Positions 3,376 through 44,687 of a stretch of DNA of 64,000 nt are shown one piece after another. The notes below the pieces were generated by a model. It saw only the letters and a program-made list of their open reading frames with translations, did no database searches and was not told the DNA's origin. Every line of letters begins with the position of its first letter. The stretch's first letter is position 1. Both the position numbers and the translations under genes were made by a program. The stretch lies in the sequence record LC680884.1; one strand, given 5' to 3'.

Positions 3376-3410
3376 AAATAAGGATAGACATATTATGTCT
3401 ATCCTTATTT
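3376..3410. terminator. Bidirectional terminator hairpin
   Basis: AAATAAGGATAGACATA-T-TATGTCTATCCTTATTT between convergent genes. Confidence 0.85.
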
Positions 3411-3413
3411 ACA

Positions 3414-3752
3414 TTAATCAATTTTTGATAGAGTAATTTCTACCCTATATCCAATTATTTCACACCATTTCTTTACTCTTCCCCAACTAACACTACCCTT
3501 TCGTAGTCCATTAATTAGATTCCAACCTTCAACTCTTCCTAATACATTATATACATCTTGATTGGTAATCTGAGCTTTATTAACTATCTGTTTAACAAAT
3601 ACTGCTAACTCAGTGTCTTTTTCTTCATCAATTTCAAATTCCAATACTTCTACTTCAACCTTACGTCCTTTTCTAGAAGGTTTTTTCTTTTCTGTTTCTT
3701 TTGTATTACTAATTTGAGAGATTTTATCTAGGAAATCATTGCTGTTTGTCAT
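3414..3752 (-). CDS. Putative XRE/Cro-like HTH protein
   Basis: C-terminal ITNQDVYNVLGRVEGWNLINGLRKGSVSWGRVKKWCEIIGYRVEI resembles XRE HTH domains. Confidence 0.5.
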   Translation of the reverse strand: MTNSNDFLDKISQISNTKETEKKKPSRKGRKVEVEVLEFEIDEEKDTELAVFVKQIVNKAQITNQDVYNVLGRVEGWNLINGLRKGSVSWGRVKKWCEIIGYRVEITLSKID

Positions 3753-3781
3753 AGTTCTGTTTCACCCTTTGCTTTGTAATC

Positions 3782-4807
3782 TTAGAAATTAATGCCGCCG
3801 TCTTTATCATCAAGATCAGGAACTTCGATCTCTGTTGCTCCAGCCATTACATCATTAAAACTAATAGGAGAATCATTATTCTCTCTTCCAGTTTCAATAG
3901 GAGAATCATCTTCAATTCCACCAGTGAATGGGATATCGTCATCACTAGGAATAGGAGGATTTAGATCAGTTCCATTCTCAATGGCACTTTCTAACTCATC
4001 TGGAGTAACATTCTTTGTTTGCGGTTTAAATCCTGCATTACGTTTAGGGCTTGATTCTTCGCTCTTATTTCCACCGAATGTATTACCATTACCTCTAGAA
4101 GCACCATTATTCCCACCAAAGATTCCACGTTTAGGTTTAGCGTTAAAGCCAGCATTATTTTTAGGCGCAGAGCTAAATGTGTTGACAGATGGTTCAGAAC
4201 CTTCTACAGCTGAATCAAACATTAATCCTGTAAGGAACAAAGTAGAGCTTTCAGATAATAGGTTGAAATTATTTAAGATATAATAAAGAGCGCCTAGTTG
4301 AGAAGCATCTAATTCAATTGCATAATCTTCTGATCCAAGGAATAAAATAACACCATTAGTATATACTTGATCTCGTTGAATAATAGTAGGAATAAAAGCT
4401 AATTGTTTACCTCCACCAAGAGGATTTGTTGTCAAAGAAACATTTGCATATTTTGGATTAATATTATTTCCTTGATAAACCTCATCAGTATTAACCATAT
4501 TATAAGCAGATGTTAGGATTGTCATAAAGTTCATCATATGAGGATAGCTGATAAAAATATCCTCATTAATTTTATTTTGAAAATCATGATATGAAAATAC
4601 AAGGAAATCAGAAGTTCTGATTTGGATTTGATCTAACGTACTTCTATCTGAATATTTTTGTGAATCATATGAGCGTGTATAAATAGAATTTAATTTATTA
4701 TCGTTCTTTCCTTTATTTCCATTAAGAATTACATTTTTCACGGAGAATAGATTTCCTACTGAAAATAAAGTTTTTTCAATTCTTTCTACTGTGTCTAGTC
4801 TGCTCAT
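3782..4807 (-). CDS. Putative single-stranded DNA-binding protein (folded N-domain, G/N-rich linker, acidic tail with DDDIPF)
   Basis: Start moved to the ATG at 4807 (SD GGGGGA). Linker GIFGGNNGASRGNGNTFGGN, internal SDDDIPF, acidic tail ending GGINF. Confidence 0.55.
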   Translation of the reverse strand: MSRLDTVERIEKTLFSVGNLFSVKNVILNGNKGKNDNKLNSIYTRSYDSQKYSDRSTLDQIQIRTSDFLVFSYHDFQNKINEDIFISYPHMMNFMTILTSAYNMVNTDEVYQGNNINPKYANVSLTTNPLGGGKQLAFIPTIIQRDQVYTNGVILFLGSEDYAIELDASQLGALYYILNNFNLLSESSTLFLTGLMFDSAVEGSEPSVNTFSSAPKNNAGFNAKPKRGIFGGNNGASRGNGNTFGGNKSEESSPKRNAGFKPQTKNVTPDELESAIENGTDLNPPIPSDDDIPFTGGIEDDSPIETGRENNDSPISFNDVMAGATEIEVPDLDDKDGGINF

Positions 4808-15614: not shown

Positions 15615-18600
15615 ATGAAAATAGATACATTAAATATAGATAAATTTATTACTTCTCATGCATGTAAAGAAGTAACAAATCCGGTTTACTTTAATATGGG
15701 AAATATACCAACTGAAGATGGATTATTTTCAACTAGTATTTTTGGTTATCCGGGAAGTAAAGAAAGAAAAATAATTTTTGGTTATATAGACTTAAAGAGA
15801 AAATTTCTCCATCCAGTAATTTATAAGCTTCTAACCTCTATGGATCGAAAAATTGCAGATTGTCTATCTGGAAAAAAATATTTTAAAGTTGAGGGCGGTA
15901 GGTTAGTTGAAGATAAAGATAATGGTAAAACTGGAGTTACCTATTTTTATACTATTTATGACCAATTAAAATTTAGTAATACTGGAACTGATAGAAGAAC
16001 AAGTTATCTTACATTATTAAATAAACTTGGTAAGGATGATATATTTATTGACAAATATTTAGTGATTCCGGCATTTTATAGAGATTATAATCCCTCAAAA
16101 TCTTCTAATGATACGATTAAAGCTGTTGATGAAGTGAATGACAAATATGCTAAATTAATTAGGTATAGCCAATCAATTTCTAAGGGTGAAGATTATGATT
16201 TTATGGGAGTAATAACAGAATCATCTATTCAGACTCTTTTATATGATATCTATGACTATTTTACATCCTCTTTAGCTGGTAAAAATGGTATGTTCCATCA
16301 AAACTCTTTAGGTAAATCTGTTGATTATGCAACTCGTAGTGTAATCTCAGCACCACGATTTAAGTCAAATAGCTGGAAGGATAACCCTATTAGATTTGGA
16401 TGGACTGGTATTCCCCTATCACAATTAGTGGTAGAATTTTATCCATTCTTTCTTAAATATATCCAAGATTATATTCTTGAACGTGAATCAGAACTTAGTA
16501 AATTTAAGCATAATGGAAAAGAGATAACTATCAGTAATATAAGAGAGCAGTTCTCTGAAGAAGCAGTAAAAAAGATGATCTCATTATACATTAAGTCTAT
16601 TGAAAGTCGTTTTAATAGTTTAATGATTAAAGATGATAAGGGGAATGAAATTCCTATTCCATTATATAGAGAAGAACTAGGGCGTAACTTTACATTAACT
16701 GATATTCTATTCATTGCGGCAGTTGATATTACCAAAGATAAACATGTATATGTAACAAGGTATCCAATAGAGCAGTATCGTATGTGACGTTCTCCTATAA
16801 GCATTTAATGTGAAATGGAGTAGATTTTATAATCTAAACTGTAAATGAGAACAAGTAAAAGATATGACCATTTTCATTGAAGACTTGTCGCTAATACTCC
16901 TACATGCATCTATTTTAAACTATATAAAATATTTGTATGAAGTTAGGTGAAGTCATCTGAATATTAGTAGTACTATAATACTAATAGATAGGGTGGGCGG
17001 TGCTATAATATGATGAGGAACACGAACCTTTTTATACTATATAAATTCAGGGTTTAGTAATACGGTACTGGTGAACGACCTGATTGTAAAGTGTGGTACA
17101 ATAGAAGTTTATATAGGGCAGAAGGCATCTAAGTTATAGCTATACTATCATTTACGGAACGTCAGAGATTCTATATAAGAGAAATTATAGTTGATACTCT
17201 TATATAGAAAGTCAGCAGACCATAGTAGTTATGAAGATGGGTAACTCCATTGGAGCGAAGGGTCATAGTCAGTTTAATAAAAATAATCGAACAATCACAA
17301 AACATAATAATAAATAGTTATGTGGAGTGATTTTAATGAGAAAATTGGATAATACTTCATTTGATTTAAGACTAAATCAAATACTAAAAGGTTACAAACG
17401 AATTGGTGAATATATTAATTCTAAAACAAAAATTTTAATATTACATGAAATTTGTAATAAAGAATTTGAGGCAAGACCTTGTAACTTATTACAGGGTTAT
17501 GGATGTCCTCATTGTAATTCAAAAGAAAAGTTAACTACAGAAAAATTTATCAATAAGGTTAAGGAATTAGTAAAAGATGAATATACTGTTTTGTCTAATT
17601 ATAAAAATTATCATTCTAAGGTAACAATGCGTCATAATAAATGTAAATTCATTTATGAAGTCAAAGCAGGAAATTTTACATCTCTAGGGAGACGTTGTCC
17701 TAACTGTTCAGGACTTATTAAGAAAAATAAAGAATATGTTCAAGAACAGTTAGACAAAATAAATCCTAATGAGTATAAAGTGATTGGTGAGTATATAAAT
17801 AATGTAACTCCATTAGAAATAATACATTTAGAGTGTAATACTATTAATAAATTTTCATTAAAAAATATTACATCTAATAAATTTTCATGTAAAAACTGTA
17901 AAATGAGTAGTGGGGAATTATTAATAAAAAATATTTTAAATAATATGGGAACAGAATATACCTATCAAAAAACTTTTAAAGAATGTAAAGATAGAAAACC
18001 CTTACCTTTTGATTTTTTTGTAGAGGAATTTAATGCTATAATAGAATATGATGGTAGACAACATTTTCTTCCTATCTTTGGTAACGATGAAAATGACCGT
18101 ATTAAAAAATTAGAATTAATACAAAAACATGATAATATTAAAAATGATTTTTGTAAGAAATATAATTTACCAATTCTTAGAATTAAATATGATACACCAA
18201 TCGATAGTATACCAATTCTTATTAAAAAATTTTTATTAAATTGATGGAACGCCTTATGCGATGAAAGTCGCACGTAGGGTGTGAAGTGGGGGAAAAAGAG
18301 GAGATAAAATCAAATCTTTACCTATCACTATAGAATATTTATCCAAGTAAAATAAGAATTCTTTCAACAAAGGAAACACGACCTCAAAAGCTGGAAGATA
18401 GATACTTACCTGATTATCCTGTTATATACCCTGACTATCCCGCAGAGGATGAACTTTTTGTTGATACAGTAATTCCTTATAATGGTTATTTAAAGGCTTT
18501 AGGCGGAGACTACGATAAAAATTAATATTATTTCTTTTTAAGGGAATACAGTGTCAAATAAACAAATAATTATTAATTATTTGGAGGTATTAATGTATGC

Positions 18601-20568
18601 CACATAAAAAGACACTGGACGAATTCAAAGAAGAAGTTAAATTACTAACTAACAATACCTATACAGTTTTATCCAATGAATATATTAACAATAAGACTAA
18701 AATCAAATTAAGGCATGAATTATGTGGAAATATATATGAGGTTAGACCTGATGTATTTCATAATGGTAGAAGATGTCCTCAGTGCGCTGATATTAATAAA
18801 GGTAAATCAAGATTAAAAAGCAATGATGAGTTTAAGAAGGAATTAAAAGAAAAGACTAATGGAAGACTTATAAGTCTTGAGAAATATATCAATATCGATA
18901 CCAAAATACTTTTCAGATGTAATGACTGTAATTATGAATGGAAGACTACTCCTTATTATGCTTTGAAAAATAGATGTCCTCAATGTTCTGGTAAAAGAAG
19001 ACTAACTACTGATGAGGTTAAAAGAAAAATTAGCTTAGTTACAAATAATGAGTATTCATTATTAGGTGAATATCGTAATAATAAAACGAAGATTAGATTG
19101 TTACATCATAGTTGTAATAAGGAGTATGAAGTTACAATTAAAAACTTTGATAATGGAAATAGATGTCCATATTGTGCATTTAAAAGTTCATCAAAAATGG
19201 AAAAAGAACTATCTTCTTTTATTAAAGGATTAGTTGTAGATAAAGTCATATGTAATGACAGGAAATTACTTGAAGGTAAAGAGATTGATATATTTATTCC
19301 TTCCAAAAAAATTGCTTTTGAATTTAATGGTTTATATTGGCATTCAGAGCAAATGGGGAAGAAAAGAAACTATCATTTAGAAAAATTAGAAAAATGTAAT
19401 AGTAAAGGGATTAGACTAATTCAAATTTTTGAAGACGAATGGGTTAACAAACCTCTCATAGTAAAAGAAAAAATAAAACACCTACTAAAATTAAATAATT
19501 CTACTAAAATATACGCTAGAAATTGTTATGTAGAAGTAATTGATAACAATTTTAAAAATGAATTCCTAGAAAGAAATCACATTCAGGGAAAAGATTTGTC
19601 ATCAATTAAATTAGGCTTATGGCTTCCAAAAGAAGATGGCGATGAACTTGTAGCGGTAATGACTTTTAGTAAACTTAGAAAAAGCCTAGGTAGAAATAGT
19701 GCTGATAATATTTTTGAACTATCAAGATTCGCTACCGATATGGACTATAGAGTAATAGGTGCTTTTAGTAAACTTCTCAAATACTTCGAGAGAAATTATG
19801 AGTGGAAAGAATTAATAACCTATGCAGATAAACGCTGGTCAGATGGCAATGTTTATATCAATAATAAATTTGAATTAAGTCATATTAGTAAACCCAACTA
19901 TTGGTATGTTAACGTTGAAAAAACTCAACGATTCCATAGATTTAATTATAGAAAGTCTAATCTCAAAAAGAAATTTCCAAAATTATATAGTGATGATAGT
20001 ACTGAATTTGAAATCATGGATAAAACTAGATTTAAAAGAATATGGGATTGTGGTAATTTAGTATTTACCTATAAAAGATAATAATCTACTGTCGTAGTAA
20101 AACCCTTTTAACTGCTGGAAAATCCTATATGGACAATCAGCATCCAAGCATCTTTAATTCATTTAAAGATGAAGGTTCAACGACTATCGAAACCACTCTA
20201 ACAGATCGTTGTGATAACGCTAGTTAGAAGGAAGGGAGTAGAGTACAGCCAAGCGGTAGAGGTATTCCGTAATAAGGTTATAATTCCTCTTTAAATGGAA
20301 ACGGAGGGCACAATTATATTGTGAAGATATAGTCTCATCTCTATAGTAATATAGAGCAGTTCATAAGAGAACGCAGTAGATGTAGCGAATCTACTGGAAG
20401 ATTTTGGGTGATACAGTATCTCTACGTGGAGTATTTAGTAAAGAAGCTAATGAAGAAGCAGAACGATTAATATGGGAAAAGAAGAATATGTTAGACCAAA
20501 TGGGACGAAACTCTCGTCAAATTGGGAATGAAGCAATACAAGCAATTTATTCTCTAACTAGAGAATAA
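15615..20568 (+). CDS. rpoC: Virion RNA polymerase beta-prime subunit, N-terminal half; spliced join(15615..16779,18332..18516,20407..20568), 503 aa
   Basis: Exon 1 carries DGLFSTSIFG, GKSVDYATRSVIS and VTRYP. Splicing restores YPIEQY-Q-NIYPSKI and the catalytic motif LGGDYD|GDTV (NADFDGD equivalent). The frame is continuous across both junctions. Confidence 0.93.
17301..17312 (+). promoter_or_regulatory. Intron-internal late promoter for the group II endonuclease
   Basis: AACA-TAATAA-TA, 24 nt upstream of the ATG at 17336. Confidence 0.65.
17336..18244 (+). CDS. Intron-encoded homing endonuclease: zinc-ribbon repeats plus EDxHD/Vsr-like PD-(D/E)xK domain
   Basis: Three H-x2-C..CPxC-type modules, then SSGELLI..LPFDFF..IIEYDGRQH. 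SD TGGAG. No RT motifs. Confidence 0.88.
   Translation: MRKLDNTSFDLRLNQILKGYKRIGEYINSKTKILILHEICNKEFEARPCNLLQGYGCPHCNSKEKLTTEKFINKVKELVKDEYTVLSNYKNYHSKVTMRHNKCKFIYEVKAGNFTSLGRRCPNCSGLIKKNKEYVQEQLDKINPNEYKVIGEYINNVTPLEIIHLECNTINKFSLKNITSNKFSCKNCKMSSGELLIKNILNNMGTEYTYQKTFKECKDRKPLPFDFFVEEFNAIIEYDGRQHFLPIFGNDENDRIKKLELIQKHDNIKNDFCKKYNLPILRIKYDTPIDSIPILIKKFLLN
18561..18572 (+). promoter_or_regulatory. Intron-internal late promoter for the group I endonuclease
   Basis: AACA-AATAAT-TA upstream of SD GGAGG and the ATG at 18597. Confidence 0.7.
18597..20081 (+). CDS. Intron-encoded endonuclease: zinc-ribbon repeats, EDxHD-like nuclease, C-terminal Hef/Mom-like GNAT-type domain
   Basis: Three CPxC modules; SKME..EIDIFI..IAFEFNGLYWH; C-terminal YAR..FLERNHIQG..ELSRF..GAFSKLLKYF..TYADKRWSDG..RIWDCG. 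Confidence 0.85.
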   Translation: MPHKKTLDEFKEEVKLLTNNTYTVLSNEYINNKTKIKLRHELCGNIYEVRPDVFHNGRRCPQCADINKGKSRLKSNDEFKKELKEKTNGRLISLEKYINIDTKILFRCNDCNYEWKTTPYYALKNRCPQCSGKRRLTTDEVKRKISLVTNNEYSLLGEYRNNKTKIRLLHHSCNKEYEVTIKNFDNGNRCPYCAFKSSSKMEKELSSFIKGLVVDKVICNDRKLLEGKEIDIFIPSKKIAFEFNGLYWHSEQMGKKRNYHLEKLEKCNSKGIRLIQIFEDEWVNKPLIVKEKIKHLLKLNNSTKIYARNCYVEVIDNNFKNEFLERNHIQGKDLSSIKLGLWLPKEDGDELVAVMTFSKLRKSLGRNSADNIFELSRFATDMDYRVIGAFSKLLKYFERNYEWKELITYADKRWSDGNVYINNKFELSHISKPNYWYVNVEKTQRFHRFNYRKSNLKKKFPKLYSDDSTEFEIMDKTRFKRIWDCGNLVFTYKR

Positions 20569-40665: not shown

Positions 40666-43600
40666 TTATCTATTTAAACTAGTAATAAAATTTAGGCTTT
40701 TCATTCTTTTTTGCTTTCTAATATTATTATCATTCTCATTATGATCTTCAAAAAATCTACTTTCATTCTTATACATTTCTAATAATATTTCACTCTGTGA
40801 TTTTTCACCACTATTAATTTTAGACAATGCATGAATGTTTCTAGCTCTATCTTTATTATTTTCTTCATTCTCATTATTATCGCCATCACTGATGACTTTA
40901 ACAAATTTATTTATATTATTTCCATATAAGAAAGCATAGCATGCCACTAGCCATGAGAATAATGTATCATCATGACCTCCATCCCTATGCTCAATCTTTC
41001 CTTTCTTATTTCTTTCTAATGTTCTTAATTCTTCAAAAATATATTTACTTGTAAACACATATGGAGTATCATTAACTGCATTACTAAGAATCTCATTGAT
41101 CATTATATCCCGACTATCTTTACTAGTAGTAACCCCATAAACTCTTGTTTTAGTCTTAACTGTCTTTTTAGATGATCTTTTTGGATCATCAACTTTCTTT
41201 TCTCCTTTTACTTCTCTAACTTCATAATATAAGTTATTAGCTACTTCTGAACGTAGTAGATCTTGTATTAAAGAGATACCTAAGTTATTTCGTTCTGGAA
41301 TAATGACACCATTAGGACAAAATTCTAATACTAGGTGTATAACCAAATCTTTTAAATCAGGTAAAGATATATTATTACTTCTAAATACTGCTTTTTGAAC
41401 CATATCTTTAGGATCAATAATAGATATCACTGTAAAATCTCGATTCAAACCTGCTCCAATATCTATACCGATTAGCCATGATTTTTTAAATATATTTCGC
41501 ATTTCACTGAAAATTTCAAATTTATATCTTTTCATTACATAAAACTTACCAATAGGTTCACCTGCATGTTGTCCAATTTCTGCTAATTGTTCCTCTGAAA
41601 AAGGCGAAGTATCGTTAGCCAATGTCCATTCCAATAATATTTCACGTTTAATTTTTAATAAGTCATTATTGAGCTGACGACATTGTTTTTGATACCATTT
41701 CTCATCATGTCCTAACTCTTTATAATTAAATACTAAATAAACAAAGTCATTTCGAGAGTTCTGTTCAATATATTTTTTAATTTCATCAATATCCCAATCA
41801 TACCAAGCTTCATCAAATGGACATGCATCATCAATCATACCCTTACAATATTTACCCATTTCTGTATCAAGATCATTCATTTATCTTCCATTAGATTCGC
41901 TACATCTAATGCGTTCTCTTATGAACTGCTCCATGTTACCATGAAGATGAGACTATATCTTCATCTCATTGAGATGCTTCCCTTTTCCAACCTCAATCAC
42001 TTAGGTTGTACTCTACTCCCTTCCTTCTAACTAGCGTTATCACAACGATCTGTTAGAGTGGTTTCGATAGTCGTTGAACCTTCATTGTTATAAACAACAA
42101 TGCTTGGATGCTGATTGTCCATATAGGATTTTCCAGCAATTAAGGAAGATTCAATTACATTATTACTAATGTATTGCCCAATAGTTTAGGAGTTGTTGTA
42201 ATTAATTTTCCGTAAGGAGTACCATTACGCTGTGCGGCTTCTGATGCTTTTGATAGTGCTGGTGCAGCACTCATAATTACCTTCCATTAGATTCGCTACG
42301 TCTAATGCGTTCTCTTATGAACTGCTCTATGTTTCCATAGAGATGAGACTATATCTTCACTCCAGTATTTAATACCTTCATCATGCTCTCCTTTTCCTTT
42401 CGCTTGAAAGTACTCTACTCAATATAATACAAATTATATTTTTCGATAGTCGTTGAACCTTCATTGTTATTTATAACAATGCTTGGATGCTGATTGTCCA
42501 TATATCCTTTAGATTATTACACTTTGGTACTAAAGACTTTAGGAGTTTCCAGCAGTTAAGAGAGTTTTAATACGCCAGTTACACCAGTTTAGCGTATACC
42601 GTATCATTATATTTTAAAAATGCAAATTCATCATCATTTATCTTCATATAGATTCGCTACGCCTATACCGTTCTCTTATGAACTGCTCCATGTTACCATG
42701 AAGATGAGACTATATCTTCATCTCATTGAGATGCCTTCCATTTCCAACTCCAATCGCTTGAGTTGTACTCTACTCCCTTATCCTTATCTAGCATTATCAC
42801 AACGATCTGATAAGTCGGTTTCGATAGTCGTTGAACCTTCATTGTTATTTATATAACAATGCTTGGATGCTGATTGTCCTAAAAGGATGTTCCAGCAGTT
42901 AAGAAGGATTCATTATAATATCACTATTATAATGGGCTAAAAATTTAACCATATAATTGGTACTGTACAACCACGCAAGTTACCTTCATATAGGTTCGCT
43001 ACGCCTATACCGTTCTCTTATGAACTGCTCTATGTTACCATAGAGATGAGACTATATCTTCACCTAAATACGGCGCTCCCCTTTTTGAATACCTATAGCT
43101 TGTATTCTACTCTACTCCCTTATCCCTATCTAGCGTTATCACAACGATCTGATAAGTCGGTTTCGATAGTCGTTGAACTTTACTTTTAAAAGTCTTAGCT
43201 TCTGATTATCCTTGGAAGGACGTTCCAGAAATTAAAGGAGTTTATACTGAGCCATAGTTAGTTAACCCAGTTTGTCAGCGTCAGTAACAGTCCTAGCAGT
43301 ACTCATTGCATCAATTTTATTATTATTCTTTGCACATGAAATTTGAGCTAAGTTATTTGTATCTTTTTTAGGATCTAAATGCGTTTTTAAATAACTTGGT
43401 AATAATTCTGTTATATCATTGAAACGTTTAATATTTAATTGGGAATCGGCGTATTGTTTATTACTAAAAATCATATGAGTATTTTTGGTAGCCCAATGAT
43501 ATACCCATATATATCGACATACAGCCCCAATTGTTTTTCCATTCTGACGAGGTAGTATCTCAATCATATCAATATTATTTTCCATAAGAAACATTTGACC

Positions 43601-43867
43601 AAGATTAGCTCTGTGTAGCATGAAATGAATAGAACCACCCGATTCAGGAATTCGCACTACTTCCCTCAAGAAATACCAAAAGTTAGTCATTACTTCAACC
43701 TGTATTCTTACCTTTTGTTCATCAGTTAAATTTGGATCATATGGATCAACACCTTGTAATGTTTCATCATTCAATTTTAAAAAGAATTTATTATTTTTTA
43801 TACCTTGATCTTTTAGAAACTTCCAGATCTTAATAAAACTTAGGTTTCTAGTAGAATAATCATACAT
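40666..43867 (-). CDS. terL: Terminase large subunit; spliced complement(join(40666..41877,42188..42271,42591..42634,42948..42975,43265..43867)), 656 aa
   Basis: Walker A PRQNGKT. Splicing restores KLG|RGCTVPIIW-Y-DEFAF (Walker B), VYA|SAAPAL and TTTP|NDLD. RNase H nuclease IGIDIGAG..DDTLFS. The frame is continuous over all four junctions. Confidence 0.94.
41878..42187 (-). mobile_element. Group IA intron, ORF-less (terL intron 4, 310 nt)
   Basis: Exon ends CCT, intron ends AAATG. P, Q, R (GTTCAACGACTA) and S (AAGATATAGTCT) present. Confidence 0.92.
42272..42590 (-). mobile_element. Group IA intron, ORF-less (terL intron 3, 319 nt)
   Basis: IGS GGCGTAT pairs with the exon end ATACGCT; the preceding ACT pairs with the 3' exon AGT; R and S conserved. 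Confidence 0.93.
42635..42947 (-). mobile_element. Group IA intron, ORF-less (terL intron 2, 313 nt), inside the Walker B strand
   Basis: TGGT|..AAATG|ATGATGAA restores W-Y-D-E; R and S conserved. Confidence 0.93.
42976..43264 (-). mobile_element. Group IA intron, ORF-less (terL intron 1, 289 nt)
   Basis: Starts with TAA. IGS GCTCAGT pairs with ACTGGGT, and ACTATG pairs with the 3' exon CGTGGT; R and S conserved. Confidence 0.94.
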
Positions 43868-43973: not shown

Positions 43974-44687
43974 TTGGTACGAAAAGAGAGAAGAAATATT
44001 GACAAGGAAATAATAGAATACTTTGGAATCAATTATGAATTAGAGGATGTAATTAAATTCTTTAAAAGAAACAAAGATGTGATTACGAATAATGAATTAC
44101 AGACAGTAATTATAAAATTTGGTGGAGATAGAATACTTTCTAATGAAGAAGTAGGACAGATCGTAAATCTATCATCAGCAAGAGTAAATCAGTTAGTATG
44201 GACAGCATTTGAAAAATGTAAAAATGAAGAAATACAAGAAGGTAAAAGAAAGAAAAATTTAACATATCAAATTGATAAAGATTTACTAGATTTAAGAACG
44301 TTTAACTTATTAAGACGGAATGGTTTAGATAATCTAAGTAAATTAATAGATTATATGAGTAAGAAAAGATTAAAGAGTATTGATAAACTTGGTGATCTTT
44401 CTGAAAAAATGATATTAACTGCTTTAGAAACAATGGGAATATCCGATAAGATAATTACTGAATATAAGAAAACTCATGGAATAGAAGGATTTGAGTATAA
44501 ATTATATGGTGCTTTTATAACATTTGAAAATAGTGATAACTCCATTTTGGATTATTTTGCTATACCTGAAAATGAAGAAACTGAGAGTTATATAAGAAAC
44601 CAATTTCCAGATAAAAATATAACTAGTATTCAATATTCCCCTGTTAGTGTAAATGGATTTAGAATCCTACTAACTAAACTAACATAA
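43974..44687 (+). CDS. Sigma70 region 4-like HTH fused to an RNAP alpha-CTD-like domain
   Basis: ITNNELQTVIIKFGGDRILSNEEVGQIVNLSSARVNQLVWTAFEK (sigma4-like) and LDLRTFNLLRRNGLDNLSKL..IDKLGDLSEKMILTALETMGI (alpha-CTD-like). Confidence 0.8.
   Translation: MVRKERRNIDKEIIEYFGINYELEDVIKFFKRNKDVITNNELQTVIIKFGGDRILSNEEVGQIVNLSSARVNQLVWTAFEKCKNEEIQEGKRKKNLTYQIDKDLLDLRTFNLLRRNGLDNLSKLIDYMSKKRLKSIDKLGDLSEKMILTALETMGISDKIITEYKKTHGIEGFEYKLYGAFITFENSDNSILDYFAIPENEETESYIRNQFPDKNITSIQYSPVSVNGFRILLTKLT

Follow-up and report, generated by a model that had tools for sequence, protein, structure and literature searches.

Bacillus phage PBS1 carries its large terminase gene (TerL) as five exons and four introns on the minus strand, with all four introns falling within 156 coding nucleotides (nt) of the ATPase region. 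The gene occupies positions 40666–43867 of the stretch of DNA analysed here, 64,000 nt of sequence record LC680884.1 (hereafter the window, whose numbering is used throughout). We consider it very probable that the four are selfish group I introns devoid of open reading frames (ORFs), that they belong to a family of about 13 copies in PBS1 and its relative AR9, and that they are spliced out to give one TerL messenger RNA (mRNA), with no regulatory role found for the arrangement. The 3.3 kb around the locus were 100% identical to PBS1 records MF360957, NC_043027 and LC680884, 98.9% identical to AR9 and 98.5% identical to Internexus; PBS1, AR9 and Internexus are all Takahashivirus jumbo phages. 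The five-exon gene is itself already known, as the AR9 GenBank record KU878088 annotates g121 as a five-piece join with the same outer limits.

Results

Four group I introns in the TerL gene

On the minus strand, an ORF of 201 codons closes with ...DADKLG and a stop, and an ORF of 404 codons restarts with ...NDLDTEMGK; the interval holds three short coding pieces. Exon 1 (43265–43867; 603 nt, 201 amino acids (aa)) includes the Walker A motif PRQNGKT and ends ...KLG, where intron 1 (42976–43264; 289 nt, phase 0) follows at G201|R202. Micro-exon 2 (42948–42975; 28 nt) encodes RGCTVPIIW and the first base of a Tyr codon, and intron 2 (42635–42947; 313 nt, phase 1) lies within that codon, Tyr211, ahead of D212-E213. 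Micro-exon 3 (42591–42634; 44 nt) then supplies (Y)DEFAFLKYNDTVYA and is followed by intron 3 (42272–42590; 319 nt, phase 0) at A225|S226. Exon 4 (42188–42271; 84 nt, 28 codons) encodes SAAPALSKASEAAQRNGTPYGKLITTTP and is parted by intron 4 (41878–42187; 310 nt, phase 0; P253|N254, after an invariant TTT) from exon 5 (40666–41877; 1212 nt including the stop), which holds the rest of the ATPase domain and the nuclease domain. The joined exons form a 1971-nt ORF for a protein of 656 aa.

The Rfam group I model RF00028 covered each intron over its full length (model positions 1–253 of 253), with 82.3, 93.5, 72.0 and 85.2 bits for introns 1 to 4, against a cutoff of 50 bits and with E values of 1e-16 to 1e-23 over the whole window. 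The last base before each intron is U, and all four introns end in the terminal G (omega-G) of this class, reading ...CTTG, ...AATG, ...TATG and ...AATG directly before the next exon. Short folds placed a U.G pair at the splice site in P1 of introns 1, 2 and 4: a 9-bp P1 in intron 1, GGU|UAA/UUAGCC in intron 2 and CCUAA/UUGGG in intron 4. For intron 3, the exon end UACGCU can be paired by eye with intron GGCGUA, while the computed minimum free energy structure took an alternative pairing; U stands opposite G in both. PBS1 has two tandem candidate guides at the 5′ end of this intron (42565–42590, minus strand), GGUGUA and GGCGUA, either of which could pair with the end of exon 3, and the first of them (GGUGUA) is disrupted in AR9 and Internexus by a substitution and a 1-nt insertion. 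Manual pairing gave P10 complementarity to the downstream exon of 5, 0, 3 and 4 bp for introns 1 to 4.

A consensus fold of the four introns and two paralogs contains 65 pairs, 26 of which still pair with both sides changed, a covariation count somewhat inflated by relatedness as the six members are paralogs of one family. Two additional covarying hairpins separate P7 from P3′ in this fold, a feature of subgroup IA. On the sense strand of the four introns the longest ORF has 39 aa, and no intron encodes a LAGLIDADG, GIY-YIG, HNH or His-Cys box protein. The original prediction, made earlier from the letters of the window, had proposed ORF-less introns of 289, 313, 319 and 310 nt with near-identical cores. 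Their lengths and coordinates proved exact and the full-length RF00028 matches place them in group I; the near-identity applies to the catalytic core, the introns as a whole being just 69–84% identical in pairwise comparison.

Ligated exons are present in RNA from infected cells

Assembled contigs from four RNA runs, two of them food-fermentation metatranscriptomes, were compared with the locus. Run X1 is a 2017 single-end RNA sequencing run and X6 comes from the same study. The X1 contigs carry AR9-specific bases, identifying the sample as an AR9 infection of B. subtilis, and the run matches a published AR9 infection time course sampled at 5, 20 and 40 min (PMC5312081). All four exon joints were present in X1 contigs, skipping 289, 313, 319 and 310 nt at the predicted places, and three were present in X6, where a 188-nt contig (record 25) spans exons 1, 2, 3 and 4. 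Exon 1 was represented by X1 record 7, and exon 5 by X1 records 1 and 2.

The individual joints recurred between runs: that of intron 1 (42975→43265) in X1, X2 and X6; that of intron 2 (42634→42948), which is unambiguous (both = 0), in the same three; that of intron 3 (319 nt skipped) in X1 and X6; and that of intron 4 (310 nt skipped) in X1, X2 and X3. The two food-fermentation metatranscriptomes carry the same joints. These runs also contain intron sequence, which shows that the template has the introns and that the joints arose by splicing.

We discounted two kinds of odd joint. Joints such as 42077→42883 and 42765→43108, considered as mis-splicing, link homologous positions of different introns that share up to 27 identical bases; they occur where AR9 differs from PBS1 and are explained by repeat collapse or paralog contigs. 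Joint 42634→43296, considered as exon skipping, comes from contig record 15, whose lengths fit 59 unaligned nt (31 from exon 1 and 28 from exon 2) and so, by contig-length arithmetic, a diverged allele.

Relatives without introns fix the junctions and show that the introns are dispensable

At the same locus, the TerL coding sequence (CDS) of the sister phage vB_BsuM-Goe21 runs through its 1971 nt without interruption. Spliced PBS1 TerL aligned to it without gaps, with 33 nt and 2 aa differences; shifting a junction by one base would alter conserved residues. The predicted splice junctions were thus borne out twice, by base-for-base colinearity with Goe21 and by RNA joints exactly where they had been placed. 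In AR9 and Internexus the gene likewise has these four introns, with exons of unchanged length that join into a clean 1971-nt ORF; the introns measure 289, 312, 320 and 310 nt in AR9 and 289, 313, 320 and 310 nt in Internexus. TerL is uninterrupted in Goe21, BpSp, S6 and IMG/VR locus L029, and the introns are therefore dispensable.

The introns interrupt conserved ATPase motifs

A profile of seven homologs matched T4 gp17 (3EZK) with E = 2.7e-15, the alignment extending into the nuclease domain. PRQNGKT aligned with the gp17 Walker A motif SRQLGKT, and GRG-CTVPIIWYDE aligned with gp17 VRG-NSFAMIYIDE, which holds Walker B residues D255-E256. Searches of Pfam and PDB with single exon pieces gave no match, and the full Goe21 protein gave no PDB match; its score against Pfam Terminase_6N was 18.6 bits, under the cutoff of 22. 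By its motifs, PBS1 TerL can be assigned to the T4-type large terminases, with an ATPase containing Walker A and Walker B and a C-terminal RNase H-like nuclease.

Intron 1 divides the invariant G201|R202-G203, and intron 2 divides the Tyr211 codon (T|AT) just before the Walker B residues D212-E213 (IIWY-DE). The site of intron 3 (A225|S226) belongs to a variable stretch. Intron 4 follows T250-T251-T252, invariant in the seven homologs, and then P253, a position and conservation that would fit the coupling motif of the ATPase. The cuts at KLG|RG, YA|SA and TTTP|N and the motif assignments thus stand as originally proposed. The placement of intron 2 within the Walker B strand (W-Y|DE) holds as to site and needs correcting as to phase, the intron splitting the Tyr codon itself (phase 1) where it had been drawn between residues. 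It is likewise right that four splicing events are needed, as all four introns must go for an intact TerL ATPase.

A genome-wide intron family and an insertion hot spot

Genome-wide comparisons were made on the PBS1, AR9 and Goe21 records. RF00028 matched 16 times in PBS1 (13 above cutoff), 14 times in AR9 and 5 times in Goe21 (one above cutoff). Within the family, the four TerL introns are not most closely related to one another: intron 4 is equally near an RNA polymerase-beta intron (84%) and intron 2, intron 3 falls in a strongly supported clade with the single strong Goe21 intron, and in the tree the TerL introns are interleaved with introns of RNA polymerase genes. This scatter among paralogs indicates that one ORF-less family has spread over the genome, four of its copies landing in the ATPase centre of TerL.

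Other phages also carry insertions in this part of the gene. At IMG/VR locus L027 (IMGVR_UViG_3300036942_000123; 3380–4010), a TerL 43% identical to that of PBS1 is interrupted by a pair of group I introns (75 and 71 bits) separated by a 72-nt micro-exon. The second lies exactly at TTTP|N, the site of PBS1 intron 4; the 15 exon bases before it are the same as in PBS1, and its 3′ tail is homologous. The first lies at SAAP|A, 12 nt downstream of the site of PBS1 intron 3, and its P1 (CCU|AAA..UUGGG) resembles that of PBS1 intron 4, though the two stand at different sites. In locus L028 the Walker B DE is followed directly by a 1.1-kb insertion that gives a weak match to group I, and locus L030 has an insertion at TTTP.

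In the Staphylococcus jumbo phage AH12, TerL is interrupted at KAG|RGG, which corresponds to the site of PBS1 intron 1. In Madawaska and MarsHill the first intervening sequence lies at G|RG, again the intron 1 site, and a 14-nt micro-exon (R-G-S-T-V) is predicted between two intervening sequences (L006:2160–2173 and L007:1034–1047, respectively); their GenBank records list just two TerL CDSs each, plus a homing endonuclease in Madawaska. Rfam gave no group I match at E ≤ 0.01 in the TerL insertions of the Staphylococcus phages, in which group I-like motifs are visible by eye. Together, these positions mark the TerL ATPase centre as a hot spot for insertions in related jumbo phages.

A further kind of insertion was seen in Klebsiella phage vB_KvM-Eowyn, whose 979-aa TerL (L009:250–3189) is enlarged in frame by about 320 aa directly behind the Walker A GK; the added stretch ends ...THN|T. 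This P-loop insertion looks like an intein.

Synonymous differences cluster at the insertion sites

The differences between PBS1 and Goe21 TerL are concentrated around the introns: 19 of the 33, all synonymous, lie within the 176 nt that surround the insertion sites (Fisher p = 1e-12), and synonymous divergence is about 15 times denser there (41878–43300) than elsewhere. Immediately next to sites 1 and 4, the bases of the intron-less outgroup BpSp are those of PBS1 and not those of Goe21. This spike suggests either that a tract was co-converted or that homing sites were recoded in Goe21, and the outgroup tally of 10:5:4 is too weak to choose between them.

Annotation and neighbouring features

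In the PBS1 and Internexus records the gene appears as separate ‘truncated’ terminase CDSs and not as a five-exon join, PBS1 listing two ‘terminase’ CDSs. A 39-aa ‘hypothetical protein’ at 42155–42274 (minus strand) is exon 4 read on into intron 4, and is an annotation artefact that recurs as PBS1 gene 8, AR9 g122 and Internexus gene 2.

The divergent neighbour of TerL (43974–44687, plus strand) corresponds to AR9 g120, which is an early gene and has an early promoter annotated; the PBS1 record names it ‘RNA polymerase subunit A’ and the AR9 record ‘hypothetical protein’. Elsewhere in the window, a group II intron (16834–18331, plus strand; matches to D1–D4 and D5/D6) and a further group I intron (20045–20356, plus strand), 5′ of which lies an ORF with a weak RNA polymerase Rpb1 match, are already in the literature (PMC12350094). 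The 305-aa ORF of the group II intron was considered as a reverse transcriptase for cDNA-mediated intron spread and set aside, having no reverse transcriptase match and only sub-cutoff zinc-finger and CapR-like ones.

Discussion

Each TerL intron folds a conserved group I core in which the last exon U pairs with a guide G in P1 and a terminal G closes the intron. We propose that each leaves the late TerL pre-mRNA by standard two-step transesterification, probably splicing itself without help from proteins, and that the product is a single 1971-nt mRNA for the 656-aa T4-type TerL. The introns would be selfish mobile elements sitting in the most conserved motifs of the ATPase (G|RG, Walker B and after TTT), where homing targets are conserved and imprecise deletion would be lethal. 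Since they have no ORF of their own, their mobility would probably depend on endonucleases acting in trans. Three points weigh against this account: the RNA evidence consists of assembled contigs and not of reads, so that rare variants are lost and neither amounts nor order of splicing can be read from it; intron depth figures are raised by paralogous copies elsewhere in the genome; and no homing endonuclease could be assigned to the four sites.

The nearest known systems share several features with this locus. AR9 g121 (KU878088) belongs to the same species (Takahashivirus PBS1) and shares all four introns and their junctions with PBS1, intron 2 being shorter and intron 3 longer by 1 nt each. 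For the AR9 introns, reviews refer to the genome paper of Lavysh et al. (2016). Within the same genome and intron family, g189, the N-terminal part of the virion RNA polymerase beta subunit (AR9 KU878088 149146–155764; 60454–62844 in the PBS1 record), is a six-piece join and thus more interrupted than TerL; one of its introns holds an HNH/AP2 endonuclease gene with its own early promoter, whereas the TerL introns are ORF-less. The T4 td, nrdB and sunY introns of subgroup IA2 are ribozymes of the same class and, like those of PBS1, interrupt essential genes where these encode conserved catalytic regions. The T4 introns differ in occurring singly, one to a gene, and in having, now or in the past, ORFs for homing endonucleases.

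Clustered introns in other phages bear on whether splicing here is regulatory. Three group I introns in orf142 of Staphylococcus phage Twort are said to have been described by Landthaler and Shub in 1999. That late gene, which differs from TerL in reportedly encoding a tail tube protein (PMC11878797) and in having three introns and not four, contains clustered, similar, ORF-less group I introns in which skipping was seen and discussed as regulation (PMC11878797, PMC3073962). In Bastillevirinae such as SIOphi (Weglewska et al. 2025), terminase genes have two or three group I introns and small internal exons, with exon skipping in vitro but only spliced transcripts in vivo (PMC11878797). These phages are Herelleviridae, their introns are mostly longer and many hold endonuclease genes, and they have two or three introns per gene compared with four in 156 nt in PBS1.

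The original prediction had raised the idea that splicing order or exon skipping might time DNA packaging or yield ATPase-dead isoforms; in a fuller form of the idea, TerL production would be delayed or tuned, or truncated isoforms made as well. We find this very unlikely, despite the precedent of skipping in Twort orf142 and the SIOphi gene. Loss of the 84-nt exon had been singled out as keeping the frame; as a single exon it is indeed the only one, but loss of exons 2 and 3 together (72 nt) or of exons 2 to 4 (156 nt) would keep it too. By manual count the intron 2 guide GCCCA makes 5 bp with the end of exon 1 (UGGGU) and 3 bp with its own exon 2 (GGU), which offers a possible route to skipping, and two contigs resemble partly spliced forms (X3 record 17, with intron 4 out and intron 3 kept, and X1 record 5, running from exon 2 into intron 2). 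Such forms are, however, expected as kinetic intermediates, or as strain variants in a metatranscriptome, and none of the six possible exon-skipping joints occurred in the contigs of the four RNA runs, contigs that drop rare variants and so leave room for low-level skipping. The life cycle does not require the arrangement, given that Goe21, BpSp, S6 and L029 lack introns at this locus, and the timing of TerL is already explained by late transcription, g121 transcripts appearing only from 20 min post infection and g121 being treated as a late gene with a non-early promoter (PMC5312081). A regulatory role is thus probably absent. Scarcely credible, in turn, is the reading of TerL as a broken pseudogene or as two separate ‘truncated’ terminase proteins, with the intron-like matches as dead relics. 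It has the separate CDS pieces of the PBS1 and Internexus records in its favour, but the exons are ligated in RNA, the micro-exons have been conserved precisely in frame, covariation is seen in intron cores of full length, and TerL is essential for tailed phages.

Two further ideas concern how the introns moved, and could extend the account of selfish, fully spliced introns. One, which we regard as possible though doubtful, is that the introns, mobilized by endonucleases in trans, convert the intron-less TerL of co-infecting relatives, and that intron-less phages escape by recoding the targets. The cluster of synonymous differences at the insertion sites, with BpSp matching PBS1 there, would fit such a role, as would the intron 4 site shared with L027 at just 43% TerL identity, the HNH and Hef-like endonucleases encoded by PBS1 and AR9, and the competition through intron endonucleases reported for jumbo phages (PMC11620839). 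Against this, the four introns are ORF-less with no endonuclease linked to their sites, PBS1 and Goe21 contain no GIY-YIG endonuclease, HNH_3 matches number two in PBS1 and one in Goe21 with no clear candidate for homing in trans, the outgroup tally is weak, and co-conversion or import of a segment could account equally well for the divergence spike. The idea is compatible with the account we favour and does not exclude it. The other, which we think unlikely, is that ORF-less introns spread locally by guide-directed ectopic insertion, creating a self-reinforcing hot spot, and that the intron 2 guide causes low-level skipping of exon 2 with an effect on packaging. It was suggested by introns 1 and 2 both following GGU, and by the first intron of L027 following CCU, as PBS1 intron 4 does, with nearly the same P1 at a different site. 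If it were true, exon 2 skipping would give a truncated protein with Walker A only, or in-frame isoforms without Walker B.

As discovery, the selfish-intron account adds little to what was on record, the five-exon annotation of AR9 dating from 2016 and exon-skipping ideas for clustered phage introns from 1999. It does correct the GenBank annotations of PBS1 and Internexus, in which the ‘truncated’ terminases and the spurious ORF can be replaced. The locus is a compact case of an essential phage gene colonized by what are probably self-splicing introns, with four in 156 coding bases and exons of 28 and 44 nt, and near-identical phages with four TerL introns (PBS1 and AR9) or none (Goe21) offer a natural system for studying homing, co-conversion and fitness cost.

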